Positions 287 to 6,318 of a stretch of DNA of 6,516 nt are shown here, one piece after another (the first letter of the stretch is position 1; each line of letters opens with the position of its first letter). Made by a program: the position numbers and the translations under genes. The notes under the pieces are model-generated. The model saw nothing but the letters and a program-made list of their open reading frames with translations, did no database searches and was not told the DNA's origin. The stretch covers positions 1 through 6,516 of IMG/VR virus record IMGVR_UViG_3300029319_006019; one strand, 5' to 3'.

Positions 287-329
287 GGGATGGGGCCCTG
301 GACCTTCCCGTTCCTCCCAGGGTCGGCGC

Positions 330-390
330 GGGCGGCGTCGAGAGCAAGTCAGGCTCCTGCACCCCTGGCATGCACCCGCCCACTTTTTTT
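330..390 (+). terminator. Possible intrinsic terminator or structured 3' end
   Basis: GGGCGG (330-335) pairs with CCGCCC (376-381), followed by T7 at 384-390. The enclosed 40 nt is long for a canonical terminator but contains a small stem (GAGC 342-345 / GCTC 353-356). Confidence 0.4.
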
Positions 391-407
391 AACCACTGGT
401 ACCCAAC

Positions 408-436
408 TTGCCCGATTCACTAAATCGTGGTATGTA
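408..436 (+). promoter_or_regulatory. Putative sigma70-type promoter P1
   Basis: TTGCCC (408-413), 17-nt spacer, TATGTA (431-436), with extended -10 TG at 428-429. It lies just after the T-tract and upstream of SD GAGGAG (449-454). The -10 lacks the final conserved T. Confidence 0.5.
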
Positions 437-460
437 GGGCACACAACCGAGGAGACTTCA

Positions 461-913
461 ATGATTGCCAAATACGTTGGTGGTCGTGACCACAAACACT
501 ATATCGAGTTCACCGGTATAACCGAACGCCGAGTAGAGTTCAGCTACAGGCTCGGGTGGAGAGCGACCCCAGTTGAGGAGATGAGGCGGGCTCTTGGGCT
601 CTGCGACATCGAGCCTACATTCTACGAGTTGCTGGAGTCTTGTGACATCCCAACCTGGGCCAGGGTTGAGCTACGACAGCCGTTCCCGTGCCGGACTGGA
701 GTGGACTACAAAGCCGTGACCGTAAGCTTTGCCGCCCGACCAAGGCAGGACCGAAAGCCCATATCTGGGGCGCTTCTATGGAAGAGCATACCGCTTACCG
801 TTGGCAGGGTTGGGCAGATGGTTCAACTCGCCTGTGTGCGCTCAATGTTGGAGGTCACACGGCCTGTGTACCACATTTATCCAGAACGCCCAGCGCTTGC
901 TATTGCTGGGTGA
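461..913 (+). CDS. Hypothetical protein, 150 aa (start revised from 290 to ATG 461)
   Basis: SD GAGGAG (449-454) 6 nt before ATG 461. The 290-460 extension would run through the stem-loops, T-tract and promoter. No recognisable motif. Confidence 0.65.
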   Translation: MIAKYVGGRDHKHYIEFTGITERRVEFSYRLGWRATPVEEMRRALGLCDIEPTFYELLESCDIPTWARVELRQPFPCRTGVDYKAVTVSFAARPRQDRKPISGALLWKSIPLTVGRVGQMVQLACVRSMLEVTRPVYHIYPERPALAIAG

Positions 914-937: not shown

Positions 938-1447
938 GTGTCATTTGAACTCGAAATATCGGAAGCAGACGGGGGACACGCAGTCTACCTGGCTGCCCGG
1001 CACGATCCTCGCCTACAGGGGAAGCTGAAAACAACCTCTAATGGCAAACTAAGTCACAACGGAAACAAGCTGGATGAGGAGGGTTTGGCCAACATATCCG
1101 TCTATTTGACGGGTAAGTACGGCATTCGCCCCACGAGGTGGGAGCTTTACTCTGGCCTTGTTGCCGCAGCGGCATCATCTCCGAGGGCCCCTCGGAAGAA
1201 AAGAGAGACCCACATTGAGAAGGATTATTTTGATGCTATCGCCAAGTGGCTGGAAGAGAATGCAAACCGAAACGATGGCACCATGATTACGACGGGCCGC
1301 ATAGGAGAGGCCATCGACCCAGAAGGGATGCTGAAATCCAGAAGAGCGGCTGAGATGAAGATTGCCGCCGCGCTGAGGAAGATGGGCTACAAGTCAAAAC
1401 GAATGATGATCAACGGGACTCGCCAGTATCGGTGGTTCCCGTCCTGA
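938..1447 (+). CDS. VapE-related protein lacking the ATPase domain (N-terminal domain plus C-terminal winged-helix-like domain), 169 aa
   Basis: GTG start with SD AAGGAG about 6 nt upstream. Both halves align by eye to the two ends of the 3615-4946 protein (ISVYLTGKYGIR vs ISLWIDATYGIK; RAAEMKIAAALRKMGYKSKR...RQYRW vs RHAEIRVAEILRELGFKKDR...RVYVW). No Walker A or B motif. Confidence 0.8.
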   Translation: MSFELEISEADGGHAVYLAARHDPRLQGKLKTTSNGKLSHNGNKLDEEGLANISVYLTGKYGIRPTRWELYSGLVAAAASSPRAPRKKRETHIEKDYFDAIAKWLEENANRNDGTMITTGRIGEAIDPEGMLKSRRAAEMKIAAALRKMGYKSKRMMINGTRQYRWFPS

Positions 1448-1589: not shown

Positions 1590-2087
1590 ATGGAAGATTT
1601 GAACTTTACTCCAGAAGAGATGCTGGCCATCATGAAGACCATTTCGACCAAAGAGGTCGAGGCAGCCAAGAGCGCCATTGCCAACGACTCACAAGCTGAG
1701 ATCGATATGACTGTGCGCATCAAGGGGCTGCTGAAGCGAGGCAATGCGTTCTCTTCAAAAGGAACGAGCCGCATCCCGTGGAAGGTAGCGATAGCTTTGC
1801 TGCTCAAGCGGTCAGGTGTGACTGGGCCAGGCTCCATCGAACTTCTCACTGAGGCCATTCGAGATGCTGCCTCAATGAACAAGGACGCGCGGGAAAAGCT
1901 GCTCAACGAGCACGGCGTTGGGGATGCTCTTCAGGTCGTGAACAAGGAGCTTTGCGAGAAGATTCCCAGGATCCAAAAGAACGGAAACATCACGTTCGTG
2001 CCTCAAGTGCGAGAAGTGGTCTGTGCGCCGGTCTTGGTTCCTGATGAAGATGAACACAACGCCTCAGAAACAGAGGCAGCCAAGTAA
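1590..2087 (+). CDS. Hypothetical protein, 165 aa, with an acidic C-terminal tail
   Basis: SD AAGGAG (1575-1580) before ATG 1590, protein-like composition, ends PDEDEHNASETEAAK. Family not recognised. Confidence 0.85.
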   Translation: MEDLNFTPEEMLAIMKTISTKEVEAAKSAIANDSQAEIDMTVRIKGLLKRGNAFSSKGTSRIPWKVAIALLLKRSGVTGPGSIELLTEAIRDAASMNKDAREKLLNEHGVGDALQVVNKELCEKIPRIQKNGNITFVPQVREVVCAPVLVPDEDEHNASETEAAK

Positions 2088-2097
2088 AGGGGAACCA

Positions 2098-2409
2098 ATG
2101 GCAAAGGGAAGACGACAACCGCCAGAGCTTCGTGTGGACACATACGATGCTCTCGCAAGCCTGGTGCGGGCCTTGGGAGGCAAGGTCCGGCCAGCCGCTA
2201 AGATTCTTGAGACCGGGTATTCGCATCTCTGGCAGCAAATGAACCACAAGCGACCACCGCCGACCGTAGACTCCCTGGCTCTGTATGCCAATCGAGTCTA
2301 CGCAAACACAGGGTTGAAGATGGTTCTTACAATCACGCCTGACATGCGGCTCTACTACTCAATCTCATGTGAAGACAACCAAACCGAGGGCGTTGTCCTT
2401 GGACCTTGA
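2098..2409 (+). CDS. XRE/Cro-like helix-turn-helix DNA-binding protein, 103 aa (start revised from 2023 to ATG 2098)
   Basis: AAGGGG SD-like element right after the upstream stop. VRPAAKILETGYSHLWQQMNHKRPPPTVDSLALYANRV follows the XRE pattern (helix-turn-recognition helix, N-x-K-R-x-P-(S/T), then a helix), followed by a beta-like GLKMVLTI. Confidence 0.72.
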   Translation: MAKGRRQPPELRVDTYDALASLVRALGGKVRPAAKILETGYSHLWQQMNHKRPPPTVDSLALYANRVYANTGLKMVLTITPDMRLYYSISCEDNQTEGVVLGP

Positions 2410-2436
2410 TTCAAGTTGGTAGATCAAGTATCTACC
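2406..2436 (+). promoter_or_regulatory. Putative promoter P3 overlapped by two palindromes
   Basis: TTGATT (2406-2411), 17-nt spacer, TATCTA (2429-2434). Palindromes CTTGA-T-TCAAG (2405-2415) and GGTAGAT-caagt-ATCTACC (2418-2436). The predicted start near 2440 coincides with the start of the structured leader. Confidence 0.45.
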
Positions 2437-2561
2437 TACAGCCCGCCAAGGCTGATCCCCTTGGCACTCCTTCGGGAGGACAGGGCTCCTGGTCAGGCCA
2501 CCCAGAGTGCCCCGCGCTTTGGGTGGCCGCATCAGGACCCCGTGGGCTTACGACCAGGAGC
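2437..2561 (+). ncRNA. Structured cis-regulatory leader RNA upstream of the primase (family not recognised)
   Basis: Stems GCCAAGG/CCTTGGC (2445-2451/2459-2465), CTCC-TTCG-GGAG with a cUUCGg tetraloop (2467-2478), a 15-bp stem with G-U pairs (2496-2510/2514-2528), a closing stem AGCCC/GGGCT (2440-2444/2544-2548), and a 10-bp anti-SD/SD pairing (2485-2494/2552-2561). Confidence 0.62.
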
Positions 2562-2565
2562 AGAG

Positions 2566-3606
2566 ATGTGGATACAACAAGCAAAGGAGCTTCCCGTCCT
2601 TCAGGCGGCGAAAGCTCTTGGGCTACAAAAACGCCGTGGACGTTCTCTGGGCCCATGCCCAGCATGCAACTCAGAGACTCGCGGAACCGATGACAACCGA
2701 GGCCCAATTGGAGTAAGCGGCTCCCAGTTGGCTTGGAAGTGTCATCGCTGCGGAATCAAGGGGGATGTCGTCGACCTGGCATCCTTTCGGCTGCATGAGT
2801 TGCCCTTTAGAGAGCTACCGTCTGGCAGACAGCTTGAAGTGCGCACATGGTTCGCAGAGCAAGGCGCATGCCCAAAGCCAGGCGAAACCCGAGTTCCACA
2901 AGGGCTTGAGCACAAGAAAACCCTTCTGCGGGTGGTCGAGGACGGATATCGCCGCCCGCCCCAGCAAGAACTACATGACCTCTGGCGAACTACTTGCTCG
3001 TTTGAAAAGTCGCTAAACGACGACCCAGAGTGGGCAGACCCCATGGCAACGTGGTTGCTGCGCAGAAAGTTTGCCCCGTTGATGCTGGACCAATGCAAGG
3101 CCGCTCGCGTGCTGCCTCCTCCAGGCCGAGTTCAAATGCCAGAGTGGTGGAGAAAGGAGTGGCTTCCCAACTACCGGATAGCTGTTCCCGTCTATGAACC
3201 AGACGGCACATTTGCCAGCATTCACGCAAGAAGCGTAGCTGTACCAGAGATCACACCTAAGACACGATGGCCATATCGATATGAAGCCAGCGAGTTGGTC
3301 ATGGCCAACCCAAACGCTGTCCGCATGATGCGAGGCCAGAAGGTCCCTGGGTTGACCGGCCTGTTAATCTGTGAGGGCCTTACTGATTTCATTCGAGCGT
3401 GCTGTTCAGCACACGCAGAAGAAATGACGATTGCCATCGTCGCTGCGGCCTCGGGTGGCTTTAGAGCAATCCCAAAAATCCAAATTCCCAAACCAATCAA
3501 AATCTACATTGCGACCGACCCTGACGACCGAGGAGACGAATACGCCACAGTGATTGCTGATGGCCTACCCGACCACAAGGTTTACCGAGTCCCGCTGGAG
3601 GCCTAA
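2566..3606 (+). CDS. DnaG-type DNA primase (C4 zinc ribbon + TOPRIM), 346 aa; start revised from TTG 2416 to ATG 2566
   Basis: SD AGGAG (2556-2560) 5 nt before ATG. Zinc motif CPAC-x24-CHRC followed by GIKGDVVDL, TOPRIM motifs LLICEGLTDF and IYIATDPDDRG, and an IHARS segment in the polymerase subdomain. The final D-x-D/N motif is absent before the stop. Confidence 0.9.
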   Translation: MWIQQAKELPVLQAAKALGLQKRRGRSLGPCPACNSETRGTDDNRGPIGVSGSQLAWKCHRCGIKGDVVDLASFRLHELPFRELPSGRQLEVRTWFAEQGACPKPGETRVPQGLEHKKTLLRVVEDGYRRPPQQELHDLWRTTCSFEKSLNDDPEWADPMATWLLRRKFAPLMLDQCKAARVLPPPGRVQMPEWWRKEWLPNYRIAVPVYEPDGTFASIHARSVAVPEITPKTRWPYRYEASELVMANPNAVRMMRGQKVPGLTGLLICEGLTDFIRACCSAHAEEMTIAIVAAASGGFRAIPKIQIPKPIKIYIATDPDDRGDEYATVIADGLPDHKVYRVPLEA

Positions 3607-3614
3607 AACAGAAA

Positions 3615-4946
3615 ATGCCTGACATCGACGGAACGCTGCGCGGAGAGAAGACCTCACTAACGAACTTGCTGAAGATTGCTGAAGCCAAAGGAGACCTGAA
3701 TGAAGATGAAGAAGAGCAACTGGACAGGCATCAACCAGACCCGATTGTGCTGCCTCAACTTGAGCAGTACCGAGACAAGCAGGGGAATCTCACCGGAGTG
3801 CCCAAGCAGTCGCGAAACAACCTGTACAAGATTTTAAGCCTGGACCGTCGATACAAGAACAGCATTTGGGAAAACCTGTTCGACGGCTCTTTGTACCTGA
3901 AAGACGACGAGTACAAGGACACGGACGACACGAAGATATCTTTGTGGATTGATGCGACATACGGCATCAAGTTTGCCGACAACACGGTGGCTGGCATTGC
4001 CAAGCTTATAGGCGAAGAAAACGGGATTAACCCGCTCCAAGAGTGGCTCAAGAGCTTGAAGTGGGATGGAGTCAAGCGCACAGACGATTGGCTTATCCGA
4101 GCGACTGGTTGTGAAGATACTGAGTTGAACCGGATGATGGGCAACAAGTGGCTCATTCAAGCAATAGCCCGCGCAATGAAGCCCGGCGCGAAGGCCGACT
4201 GTGTCTTGATCTTGATTGGACCGCAAGGCGCACGGAAGAGCAGTCTGCTCAGGACCTTGGCTACCGAGCAGTTTTTTTCGGATACGCCTCTCGATATTGG
4301 TTCAGCCAATGCCTACACGCAGATTCAAAGAGCCTGGATCTACGAGGTAGCGGAGCTTGACTCTGTCAGGCGCTCAGCCAACTCAGCAACCAAGGCCTTC
4401 ATCAGTGCCCAGGAAGACACCTACAGGCCAGCGTATGGCCGCAGGGCAGTCACAATCAAGAGACACACCGTCTTTGCCGGAACCACGAACGACAGCCAGT
4501 TTATGAATGACTGGACGGGAAGTCGGCGGTACTGGCCAATCAAGGTGAAGAAGGTTGATCTGGACTGGGTTGCAGAGTTTCGTGACCAGCTTTGGGCTGA
4601 AGCCATCCTTGAGTACAACTCAGGCGCCACATGGTGGCTTGAACAGGAATGGGAGAAGGAGCGCGAAGAAGAAAGCGAGATCTTCCGGCAGGAGGACCCT
4701 TGGAGGGATGTCATCGTTCAGTATGCGCAAAACTACTACGGTGTGATCTCAACGCGAACCATTATGGAGGATGCGCTCAAGCTTGAGAAAAACCACATGA
4801 CTCGACACGCCGAGATTCGTGTGGCCGAGATTCTGCGAGAACTTGGATTTAAGAAGGACCGCAAGCGTGTGGGTGACAGCCGAGTCTATGTTTGGACGAA
4901 AACTAAAGTGATTGAACTAGATAAAACAGGTGATATCGATGAATGA
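3615..4946 (+). CDS. VapE/VirE (virulence-associated protein E) family P-loop ATPase, probable replicative helicase, 443 aa
   Basis: Family-typical WDGVKR, ARAMKPGAKADCVLILIGPQGARKS (Walker A, nt 4218-4241), WIYEVAELD (Walker B), KAFISAQEDTYRPAYGR, FAGTTN, DWTGSRRYWPI, RDQLWAEA and EDPW, then a C-terminal winged-helix-like region. Confidence 0.92.
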   Translation: MPDIDGTLRGEKTSLTNLLKIAEAKGDLNEDEEEQLDRHQPDPIVLPQLEQYRDKQGNLTGVPKQSRNNLYKILSLDRRYKNSIWENLFDGSLYLKDDEYKDTDDTKISLWIDATYGIKFADNTVAGIAKLIGEENGINPLQEWLKSLKWDGVKRTDDWLIRATGCEDTELNRMMGNKWLIQAIARAMKPGAKADCVLILIGPQGARKSSLLRTLATEQFFSDTPLDIGSANAYTQIQRAWIYEVAELDSVRRSANSATKAFISAQEDTYRPAYGRRAVTIKRHTVFAGTTNDSQFMNDWTGSRRYWPIKVKKVDLDWVAEFRDQLWAEAILEYNSGATWWLEQEWEKEREEESEIFRQEDPWRDVIVQYAQNYYGVISTRTIMEDALKLEKNHMTRHAEIRVAEILRELGFKKDRKRVGDSRVYVWTKTKVIELDKTGDIDE

Positions 4947-6318
4947 TGTATGTGTGATTGCAGGAGCGTACTACTTTCCACCGGGAAATAAAGTCGCGGC
5001 CAAACTTTCAAAGTCCTACAGCCTTCCCAACCCTGACTACCGAATGGCTCAAGGCCTACGAAATCGTGGGAAGTGGGTGCAAATGCCGCCCGAACGAGTC
5101 AGCGCATGCCAGGAAATTCCATTCGAGCACCCCTGGGGTGGCGGCATGGCGATTCCTCGTAACGCAAATCTTGATGGGAGCGGCCTCAAGGTAATCGACA
5201 AGCGAACGTACCCAGTAGTCAAAGATCCGTTGACGCCCGTTGGTGGATACAACCTTCGCTCTTACCAGGAAGACGCGCTTGGCGAGTGGATTAAGGCCGG
5301 ACAAGAAGGAGTCATCATTGCTCCATGTGGCGCCGGAAAGACCACCATTGGCATTTTCGCCATCACAGCTTGTGAAACCAAGACGCTAATCCTGGTACAC
5401 ACCAACGACCTTGCTGAGCAGTGGACAAACCGAATCGACACCACTCTTGATGGCTGCACCACCAGCGTCTATGGAGGAGGCAAGAGAGACGACTCAGGCC
5501 GCGTTGTAGTTGCTACATTCCAGACGCTTGACCGAATGTCTTGGGTTGAGCGCTATGAGTGGGCAAAGCAGTTCGGGCTCTGCATTGTTGACGAGTGTCA
5601 CCACGTTCCGGCTGAGATGTTTAGCCGAGTGATGATGACGATTCCAGCAAAACACCGGCTCGGGCTAACGGCTACCCCGCGCAGACAAGATGGCCTTACA
5701 TCGATGCTCTGGTGGCATCTCGGACCAGCCGTCTACGAGATTACCAATGCAGACCTGGCCAAAGACGGGCATGTTTTGCCACCGAAAGTAGAGTGGTTGA
5801 TGACCGACTGGACGGGGCCTAAAGGACAAATGGACTGGCCAAAGCTCGTGAATGAGATGGCTGCAAACATGTACCGAAATGAACGCATCATTAGCCGAAT
5901 AGTTCGAGCGATTGAAGATGGTCGACAAGTCCTTGTTCTTTCTGATCGAGTCAACCATTGCTCGCTTATGGCTCAAGAGCTTCGACTTCGTGGATACACC
6001 GCCGAGCCGCTGGTTGGTCGTATGACAAAGAAGCAGCGCGCCGAAACTTTGGACGCTGCCAGGAATAGGCAAATACAGGTAGTCTGCGCCACGACGCTTG
6101 CAGATGAGGGCCTTGATCTTCCATCGCTTGATACGGTTGTTCTGACAACGCCGACCAAGGCTTTGGCGCGCATTCAGCAGCGAATCGGACGGGTAATGCG
6201 GCCACACCCAGACAAGAAGCCCCCTCTTGTCATTGATGTGGTTGATGACATCGGGTCAATGCGCGGACTCGCCAAGAAGCGAATGAAGCTGTACACTCGT
6301 ATTGGATGTACGTGGTAG
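4939..6318 (+). CDS. Superfamily 2 DExH-box helicase (UvsW/XPB/ResIII-like), about 459 aa
   Basis: Q motif LRSYQ, I APCGAGKT, Ia LVHTNDLAEQW, Ib VATFQTL, II DECHH, III LTATP, V LADEGLDLP, VI QRIGRVMR. ATG 4939 (SD-like AGGTGA 4928-4933, ATGAATGA overlap with the upstream stop) is preferred over GTG 4930. Confidence 0.93.
   Translation: MNDVCVIAGAYYFPPGNKVAAKLSKSYSLPNPDYRMAQGLRNRGKWVQMPPERVSACQEIPFEHPWGGGMAIPRNANLDGSGLKVIDKRTYPVVKDPLTPVGGYNLRSYQEDALGEWIKAGQEGVIIAPCGAGKTTIGIFAITACETKTLILVHTNDLAEQWTNRIDTTLDGCTTSVYGGGKRDDSGRVVVATFQTLDRMSWVERYEWAKQFGLCIVDECHHVPAEMFSRVMMTIPAKHRLGLTATPRRQDGLTSMLWWHLGPAVYEITNADLAKDGHVLPPKVEWLMTDWTGPKGQMDWPKLVNEMAANMYRNERIISRIVRAIEDGRQVLVLSDRVNHCSLMAQELRLRGYTAEPLVGRMTKKQRAETLDAARNRQIQVVCATTLADEGLDLPSLDTVVLTTPTKALARIQQRIGRVMRPHPDKKPPLVIDVVDDIGSMRGLAKKRMKLYTRIGCTW

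Follow-up and report, generated by a model that had tools for sequence, protein, structure and literature searches.

In bacteriophage T7 gp4 and other fused DnaG-type primase-helicases, a zinc finger, an RNA-polymerase domain with the Glu, DxD and motif VI signatures, a flexible linker and a hexameric helicase follow each other in a single polypeptide. TOPRIM-VapE fusions of this kind include those of Marinobacter phage PS3 (728 aa) and Pseudomonas phage Haddon (748 aa), and VapE/DUF927 helicases fused to DnaG-like primases have been described (PMC4889955). In bacterial DnaG with DnaB and in T4 gp61 primase with gp41 helicase, separate proteins form a primosome and primase action is linked to helicase binding, but DnaG and gp61 carry a complete TOPRIM and bind the helicase through their own C-terminal domain or helix (HIM2 of gp61; PMC10359460). 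Both split and fused pri-rep arrangements exist among the self-loading helicases of the SaPIs, with SaPI1 Pri/Rep1 being separate and SaPI5 PriRep5 fused (PMC9371898). Finally, in OLD nucleases and RNase M5 a 'glutamate helix' C-terminal to the TOPRIM sheet supplies an extra acidic ligand to the active site from within the same chain (PMC6755086).

The stretch of DNA analysed here (the window, 6,516 nucleotides of the IMG/VR virus record IMGVR_UViG_3300029319_006019) encodes a DnaG-type primase and a VapE-type helicase as two polypeptides, and the cut between them does not lie in the linker but upstream of motif VI, so that the last conserved acidic motif and the segment corresponding to the fourth TOPRIM helix travel with the helicase. 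In contrast to DnaG and gp61, the element after beta4 belongs to the helicase, and the primase has no C-terminal interaction module. SaPI1 Rep1, which is the closest solved structure to this VapE, aligns only from its residue 22 to VapE profile position 56 and thus lacks the N-terminal motif-plus-linker extension, and nothing in the corresponding paper (PMC9371898) places a primase motif on Rep. No split of this kind was found described in the open-access text searched.

Table. Features of the primase-helicase junction; positions are those of the window, primase residues are numbered from M51 at nt 2566
Positions	Strand	Feature	Remarks
2566..3606	+	DnaG-type DNA primase gene (likely extent): zinc-binding domain plus RNA-polymerase domain, with a TOPRIM fold that stops after beta4	ORF open from 2416, but homologues start at M51 (ATG 2566) and begin MWIQ; phrog_47 DNA primase 2.8e-11
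3370..3387	+	TOPRIM glutamate motif C-E-G-L-T-D (E270, D274)	Follows strand 265-269 of the model
3517..3525	+	TOPRIM DxD motif (D318-P-D320)	Follows strand 312-317 of the model
3580..3594	+	Last TOPRIM strand beta4 (V-Y-R-V-P); the primase ends three residues later	Model strand 339-343; Y340, R341 and L344 conserved
3597..3601	+	GGAGG, Shine-Dalgarno-like site for VapE embedded in the primase codons for L-E-A	13 nt before ATG 3615; the same CTGGAGG lies 5-8 nt before the VapE ATG in relatives such as L014, L016 and L021 (our numbering)
3604..3606	+	Primase stop codon TAA	ORF ends ...KVYRVPLEA
3615..3689	+	VapE residues 1-25: displaced TOPRIM motif VI (D3 at 3621-3623, D5 at 3627-3629) plus the following helix	VapE ORF 3615-4946 starts MPDIDGTLRGEK...; low-confidence helices 2-8 and 15-24, detached from the body in the VapE model
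3690..3749	+	Variable acidic linker (about residues 26-45)	Length and sequence vary among relatives; pLDDT below 50 for residues 26-33
3750..4946	+	VapE/VirE-type SF3 helicase-initiator body	PF05272 1.1e-76

C31, C34, C59 and C62 of the zinc-binding motif, E270, G271, T273 and D274 of the glutamate motif, and D318 and D320 of the DxD motif are invariant in 22 primase sequences, whereas no conserved acidic residue is present after D320. A profile search against PDB sequences gave only a non-significant hit to T4 gp61, with a weak alignment to its zinc ribbon, and fold comparison was needed. The AF2 model (pLDDT 87) matched Aquifex DnaG 2au3 (2.7e-9), the M. tuberculosis and E. coli DnaG cores and T7 gp4 in Foldseek searches, and it ends at beta4 with only three TOPRIM helices. 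The primase stays below the Pfam gathering thresholds, with 15.4 bits against a cut-off of 22.1 for Toprim_2 and 14.1 against 23.1 for Toprim, because the domain is truncated: Toprim_2 is matched to position 70 of 88 here, against 86-87 of 88 in four fused relatives, which pass. The helicase scores 257.6 bits against a cut-off of 25 for PF05272, with G202, Q204-G205-A206, K208 and S209 of the Walker A P-loop invariant. Its predicted fold resembles that of SaPI1 Rep1 (7pds, 8e-28, TM 0.66), followed by NrS-1 and the poxvirus D5/E5 helicases, and an hmmsearch against PDB gave 2.5e-56.

To investigate whether the split is a peculiarity of this contig, the junction was examined in related viral loci. 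All 83 loci that hold both genes end the primase and start VapE at the same residue (primase 35-88% identical, VapE 48-95%). They give 50 distinct junction sequences with 11 gap/overlap classes ranging from +13 to -14 nt, all three frame relations, three stop codons and ATG, GTG or TTG starts. In 65 distinct VapE relatives (48-95% identical), M1, D3, D5 and L15 are the only invariant positions among the first 56 residues, L18 being nearly so, whereas the neighbouring linker is not conserved. The split was also found in a Pirellulaceae MAG contig; the scan of genome contigs returned a single locus. At 50% identity, the primase family comprises 2318 cluster representatives at E <= 0.001, and about 131 of the best 150 are truncated at this point. 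Nothing close was found in GenBank phages: megablast of the window and tblastn of the primase gave no match, and tblastn of VapE hit cultured phages only from residue 107 or so onward.

The origin of the VapE N-terminus was then addressed by comparing the two pieces separately with naturally fused relatives. All 14 fused relatives carry a D-h-x-[D/E/N/S] motif plus an L..L[IL]..A helix right after beta4, as do Marinobacter phage PS3 and Pseudomonas phage Haddon (TDFDDL and TDFNDL). An HMM built only from fused segments placed the primase C-termini on positions 2-39 (E about 1e-6) and VapE residue 2 onward on positions 44-76. Hhalign aligned the VapE N-terminus to the post-beta4 segment with P = 2.3e-5; 1 of 200 column shuffles reached that score, and every other VapE window scored 5-12.5 against 23.4 for the N-terminal one. 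The match of this 25-residue peptide is nevertheless modest (hhalign probability 76%, single-sequence HMM E-values 0.03-5), and a Pfam scan of isolated 40-residue VapE N-termini gave only chance-level hits, as expected for so short a piece. The motif follows the primase rather than the helicase type, as distant split partners of the DnaB_C/AAA_25 and DUF927 families also start with it, for example MSQVRDANDV, MPDFDE and MNAARDLSEF..., the last closely resembling a fused protein of our set, P0022.

The first-pass annotation had proposed a two-polypeptide primase completed by the helicase N-terminus, a recoding event, or a 1-nt error or mutation; its description of the junction is correct, and the comparative data support the first of these readings. 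We interpret the locus as a conserved gene fission of a DnaG/T7-gp4-type primase-helicase, cut inside the TOPRIM fold, with the two genes translated as separate, translationally coupled proteins. The first 25 or so residues of the helicase, homologous to the loop carrying the third acidic cluster and to the fourth TOPRIM helix, are inferred to dock back onto the primase next to beta4, which would restore the complete fold, supply the missing metal-binding aspartate, tether up to one primase per helicase subunit and make full primase activity depend on helicase binding. In S. aureus DnaG, the equivalent D343 binds a third metal and D345 pairs with an Arg of the N-terminal subdomain (PMC6755086). 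As there is no direct evidence of docking or of a catalytic role for D3 and D5, we give this reading a probability of about 0.6. The core Glu and DxD motifs are intact, so that the primase might be active alone, the residue after D5 in the window is Gly instead of the usual Asp/Glu, and of three primases that keep motif VI in cis, one is still followed by a helicase starting x-T-D-I-T-Q-A-L. More tentatively, the primases of a large, mostly uncultured phage family might be catalytically incomplete until docked on a helicase of the VapE, DnaB-like, DUF927 or DUF3987 type that supplies the third metal-binding motif from its N-terminal tail, an arrangement that would have arisen or reverted at least 7 times at the same boundary.

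Alternatively, the peptide may descend from the motif VI and helix segment but act only as a tether that completes the fold, with structural aspartates and a primase that is catalytically competent on its own. This is less likely but possible, as the Glu and DxD motifs are intact, helicase-primase contacts through a single helix next to the TOPRIM fold are known in T4 (gp61 HIM2; PMC10359460), and one of the two aspartates of S. aureus DnaG makes a structural salt bridge rather than binding metal. However, the strict invariance of D3 and D5 over 48-95% identity and the recurrence of an acidic residue at this place across different helicase families represent more constraint than a simple docking helix usually shows. 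It is doubtful that the D-x-D peptide is unrelated to TOPRIM and serves a helicase-intrinsic or regulatory role, the primase having simply lost motif VI. The profile match is short and only moderately significant, and Rep1 lacks an equivalent extension, but the motif occurs at the start of non-homologous helicases (VapE, DnaB-like, DUF927) whenever they follow a truncated primase of this family, it lies directly after beta4 in fused proteins, and only the N-terminal window of VapE matches the fused segment.

A programmed frameshift or read-through yielding a fused product is very unlikely. The VapE frame, +2 (= -1) relative to the primase, is open from 3561, 54 nt upstream of its ATG, and four of the 50 distinct junctions are in frame and separated by a single stop. 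However, no X XXY YYZ heptamer is present in the primase frame between 3540 and 3606, the frame relation is not conserved, the VapE frame is closed immediately upstream of the start in several loci, and a start codon is always kept exactly two codons before D3, often with an SD or an ATGnnTGA-type coupling overlap. A sequencing or assembly indel, or a recent inactivating mutation, is refuted by the occurrence of the same split in independent contigs from many metagenomes.

Known systems couple primase and helicase, which is central to lagging-strand synthesis, either by a covalent fusion (T7) or by a dedicated interaction domain on a complete primase (DnaG, T4 gp61). A conserved cut inside the catalytic fold would be a third solution, which would physically guarantee that primers are made only on the helicase and offers a natural split-enzyme system for testing what motif VI does. 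The acidic N-terminal peptide of the partner helicases also marks cognate primase-helicase pairs in metagenomes. Finally, the sequence at 938-1447, which the first-pass annotation had considered a mini-paralog lacking the N-terminal segment, resembles VapE only over about 31 C-terminal residues (pairwise E = 1e-5) and is not a shortened VapE.

The complete 6516-nt IMG/VR viral contig was inspected first, and every coordinate reported for it in the first-pass annotation, which had placed the last acidic motif of the primase at the start of the helicase gene, is right. The upstream ORF ends ...KVYRVPLEA, whereas the downstream ORF begins MPDIDGTLRGEK... and lies in frame +2 relative to the first. 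No canonical slippery heptamer was found in the primase frame between positions 3540 and 3606. The features of the window, together with two in related loci, are listed in the table.

Coordinates of the features discussed in the text (positions in the window unless a locus is named)
Position	Strand	Feature
290-913	+	ORF without Pfam or PHROG match at the thresholds used
938-1447	+	169-aa ORF
1590-2087	+	ORF without Pfam or PHROG match at the thresholds used
2023-2409	+	ORF without Pfam or PHROG match at the thresholds used
2410-2565		Primase frame open 156 nt upstream of the likely start
2416-3606		Upstream (primase) ORF
2566		ATG of M51, the likely primase start
3561		Position from which the VapE frame is open
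3595-3603		Primase codons for L-E-[A/G] (CTGGAGG), doubling as the Shine-Dalgarno site of the VapE gene
3597-3601		GGAGG
3604-3606		Primase stop codon TAA
3615-4946		Downstream (VapE-type helicase) ORF
4930-6318	+	SF2 helicase gene
near 3985-3995 (related loci L014, L016, L021, L028 and others)		Same double use of the primase codons for L-E-[A/G] (CTGGAGG)
3600-3800 (locus L093)		Primase keeping its own motif VI, followed by a DUF3987 helicase

The upstream protein matches phage primase families (phrog_47, 2.8e-11), but matches Pfam Toprim_2 and Toprim only weakly and below threshold. Its homologues start at M51, which gives a protein of 346 residues, although tblastn similarity extends into the open stretch upstream of this start in the related loci L002 (from residue 15) and L007/L008 (from residue 9), and this stretch could be an N-terminal extension with a non-ATG start or a conserved non-coding element. 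An alignment of 22 relatives showed four invariant zinc-ligand cysteines, EG.TD (E270, D274) and D318-x-D320, with no conserved acidic residue thereafter. In the AF2 model (pLDDT 87), the predicted TOPRIM part reads beta1 (265-269), alpha (272-284), beta2 (289-293), alpha (298-304), beta3 (312-317), alpha (321-332) and beta4 (339-343), and the chain ends at residue 346. Foldseek places this model with Aquifex DnaG (2.7e-9), the M. tuberculosis and E. coli DnaG cores, and T7 gp4. The downstream protein is a VapE/VirE-type SF3 helicase (PF05272, 1.1e-76), whose closest solved relative is the SaPI1 Rep1 hexamer 7pds (Foldseek 8e-28, TM 0.66; hmmsearch 2.5e-56). It is followed by an SF2 helicase gene (ResIII plus Helicase_C; phrog_16, 3e-81) that overlaps the end of VapE by 17 nt, and the module is therefore primase, then SF3 helicase, then SF2 helicase.

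To investigate whether the split is conserved, viral contigs were scanned with VapE, which returned 80 loci, 48-95% identical and nearly all matching from residue 1. In all 83 loci that hold both genes, a primase 35-88% identical ends immediately before the VapE start. These loci contain 50 distinct junction sequences and 11 spacing classes, ranging from +13 nt to a 14-nt overlap, the commonest class being an 8-nt overlap, ATGGCTGA. All three frame relations (counts 4, 39 and 7) and all three stop codons occur, the starts are ATG (44), GTG (4) or TTG (2), and in several loci the VapE frame is closed directly upstream of its start. The VapE protein always begins M-x-D-[I/L]-D. This geometry is that of ordinary translational coupling. 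In a subset of loci, the primase codons for P-L-E-[A/G] contain the GGAGG that serves as the VapE ribosome-binding site, and one stretch thus serves both a conserved C-terminal peptide and translation initiation.

Among the first 56 VapE residues, only M1, D3, D5 and L15 are invariant, with L18 nearly so, whereas the following 20-40 residues form a variable acidic linker. A profile search of 1.84 billion representatives found 2318 members of the primase family at E <= 0.001, of which 608 scored at or below 1e-30. Of the best 150, about 131 stop within about 25 residues after beta4, four or five short ones keep an acidic motif of their own, and fourteen are long fusions of 686-1100 aa. In all 14 fusions, beta4 is followed after a short loop by D-h-x-[D/E/N/S]-h and then by a helix of the form L..L[IL]..A, as in ...HRAPLPAGQ-DIDDVV... 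and ...YRARPPDES-DLDEVV.... The closest cultured VapE relatives are also TOPRIM-VapE fusions, and at this place Marinobacter phage PS3 carries TDFDDL and Pseudomonas phage Haddon TDFNDL. Pfam Toprim_2 is matched to profile positions 86-87 of 88 in four fused proteins, but only to position 70 of 88 in the window primase and in that of L024, a related locus.

The correspondence between the VapE N-terminus and the missing end of the TOPRIM fold was then examined with profiles. An HMM built only from the fused segments aligned split primase C-termini to positions 2-39 (E about 1e-6) and VapE from residue 2 to positions 44-76; although the latter E values were only 0.03-5, these were the best non-primase hits among 4377 ORFs. 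Profile-profile alignment of VapE 1-28 against the fused segment paired columns 3-23 with columns 41-61, at P = 2.3e-5 and a probability of 76%. One of 200 column shuffles reached that score, and the other 25 sliding windows of VapE scored 5-12.5, compared to 23.4 for the N-terminal one. In the VapE model, residues 1-40 have a pLDDT of 53-66 with two short predicted helices (2-8 and 15-24), and are separated from the body by a segment with pLDDT below 50, which is what a tethered peptide with an external partner would look like.

The motif follows the primase and not the helicase family. In six loci with more distant truncated primases (L087 to L092), the downstream gene also starts with the acidic motif. 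The L090 start is nearly the post-beta4 segment of P0022, one of the fused representatives, and the fused relatives use DUF927, DUF3987, D5_N/DUF5906 and VapE helicase modules.

Downstream partners of more distant truncated primases and their N-terminal starts
Locus	Downstream partner	N-terminal start
L087	AAA_25/DnaB-like (Pirellulaceae MAG contig)	MPDFDE
L088		MPDIEE
L089	DUF927	MSEPRDPRD
L090		MNAARDLSEFVAGGGDLAARIAAAE
L091		MKKSADWTS
L092	DnaB_C	MSQVRDANDVLKEG

A FastTree of 151 primase cores was built with the columns after beta4 excluded. On this tree, which is approximate and shows recurrence but not the direction of change, the cis/split state needs at least 9 changes, 7 of which are forced by well-supported branches, and the window sits in a supported all-split clade of 19. 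The changes always fall at the beta4/motif VI boundary and involve different helicase families, and this boundary looks like a recurrent recombination or fission point.

The TOPRIM fold is a four-stranded sheet between two pairs of helices, and in S. aureus DnaG the D343/D345 pair after the last strand binds a third metal (D343) and bridges to an Arg of the N-terminal subdomain (D345) (PMC6755086). The primase described here has the four strands but only three helices, and it lacks this pair. We therefore infer that VapE residues 1-25 dock next to beta4, restore the fourth helix and place D3 and D5 at the active site. The acidic linker would then tether one primase per helicase subunit, an arrangement functionally like T7 gp4 but non-covalent and with catalysis gated by docking. 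Although the split and the homology of the peptide are established, both the docking and the catalytic role are inferences, and we assign a probability of about 0.6 to the full reading. One observation calls for caution, as one of three helicases downstream of primases that keep motif VI in cis still starts x-T-D-I-T-Q-A-L. In this locus (L093), the primase motif is ADWTDL, and the helicase start may be a relic of an earlier split state or due to chance. A version in which the peptide only docks is possible but unlikely. A sequencing indel and a conserved recoding signal are both excluded by the conservation of the split.

Fusions of VapE or DUF927 helicases with DnaG-like primases are known (PMC4889955), as are separate versus fused pri-rep genes in SaPIs (PMC9371898), and T4 gp61 binds gp41 through its own helix after a complete TOPRIM (PMC10359460). 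However, no description of a primase whose last TOPRIM motif is encoded on the helicase was found in the open-access literature. The finding is real, conserved and widespread in uncultured phages. The primase lacks motif VI in cis, a defining feature of DnaG-type primases, and falls below the Pfam thresholds; it probably works like a DnaG-type primase but is an incomplete member on its own.

The 169-aa ORF upstream of the primase, which the first-pass annotation had called a mini-paralog of VapE, resembles VapE only over about 31 C-terminal residues (VapE 397-427; pairwise E = 1e-5). This lies in the region that is a winged-helix DNA-binding domain in SaPI Rep proteins, and the ORF may code for a separate origin-binding or regulatory protein.
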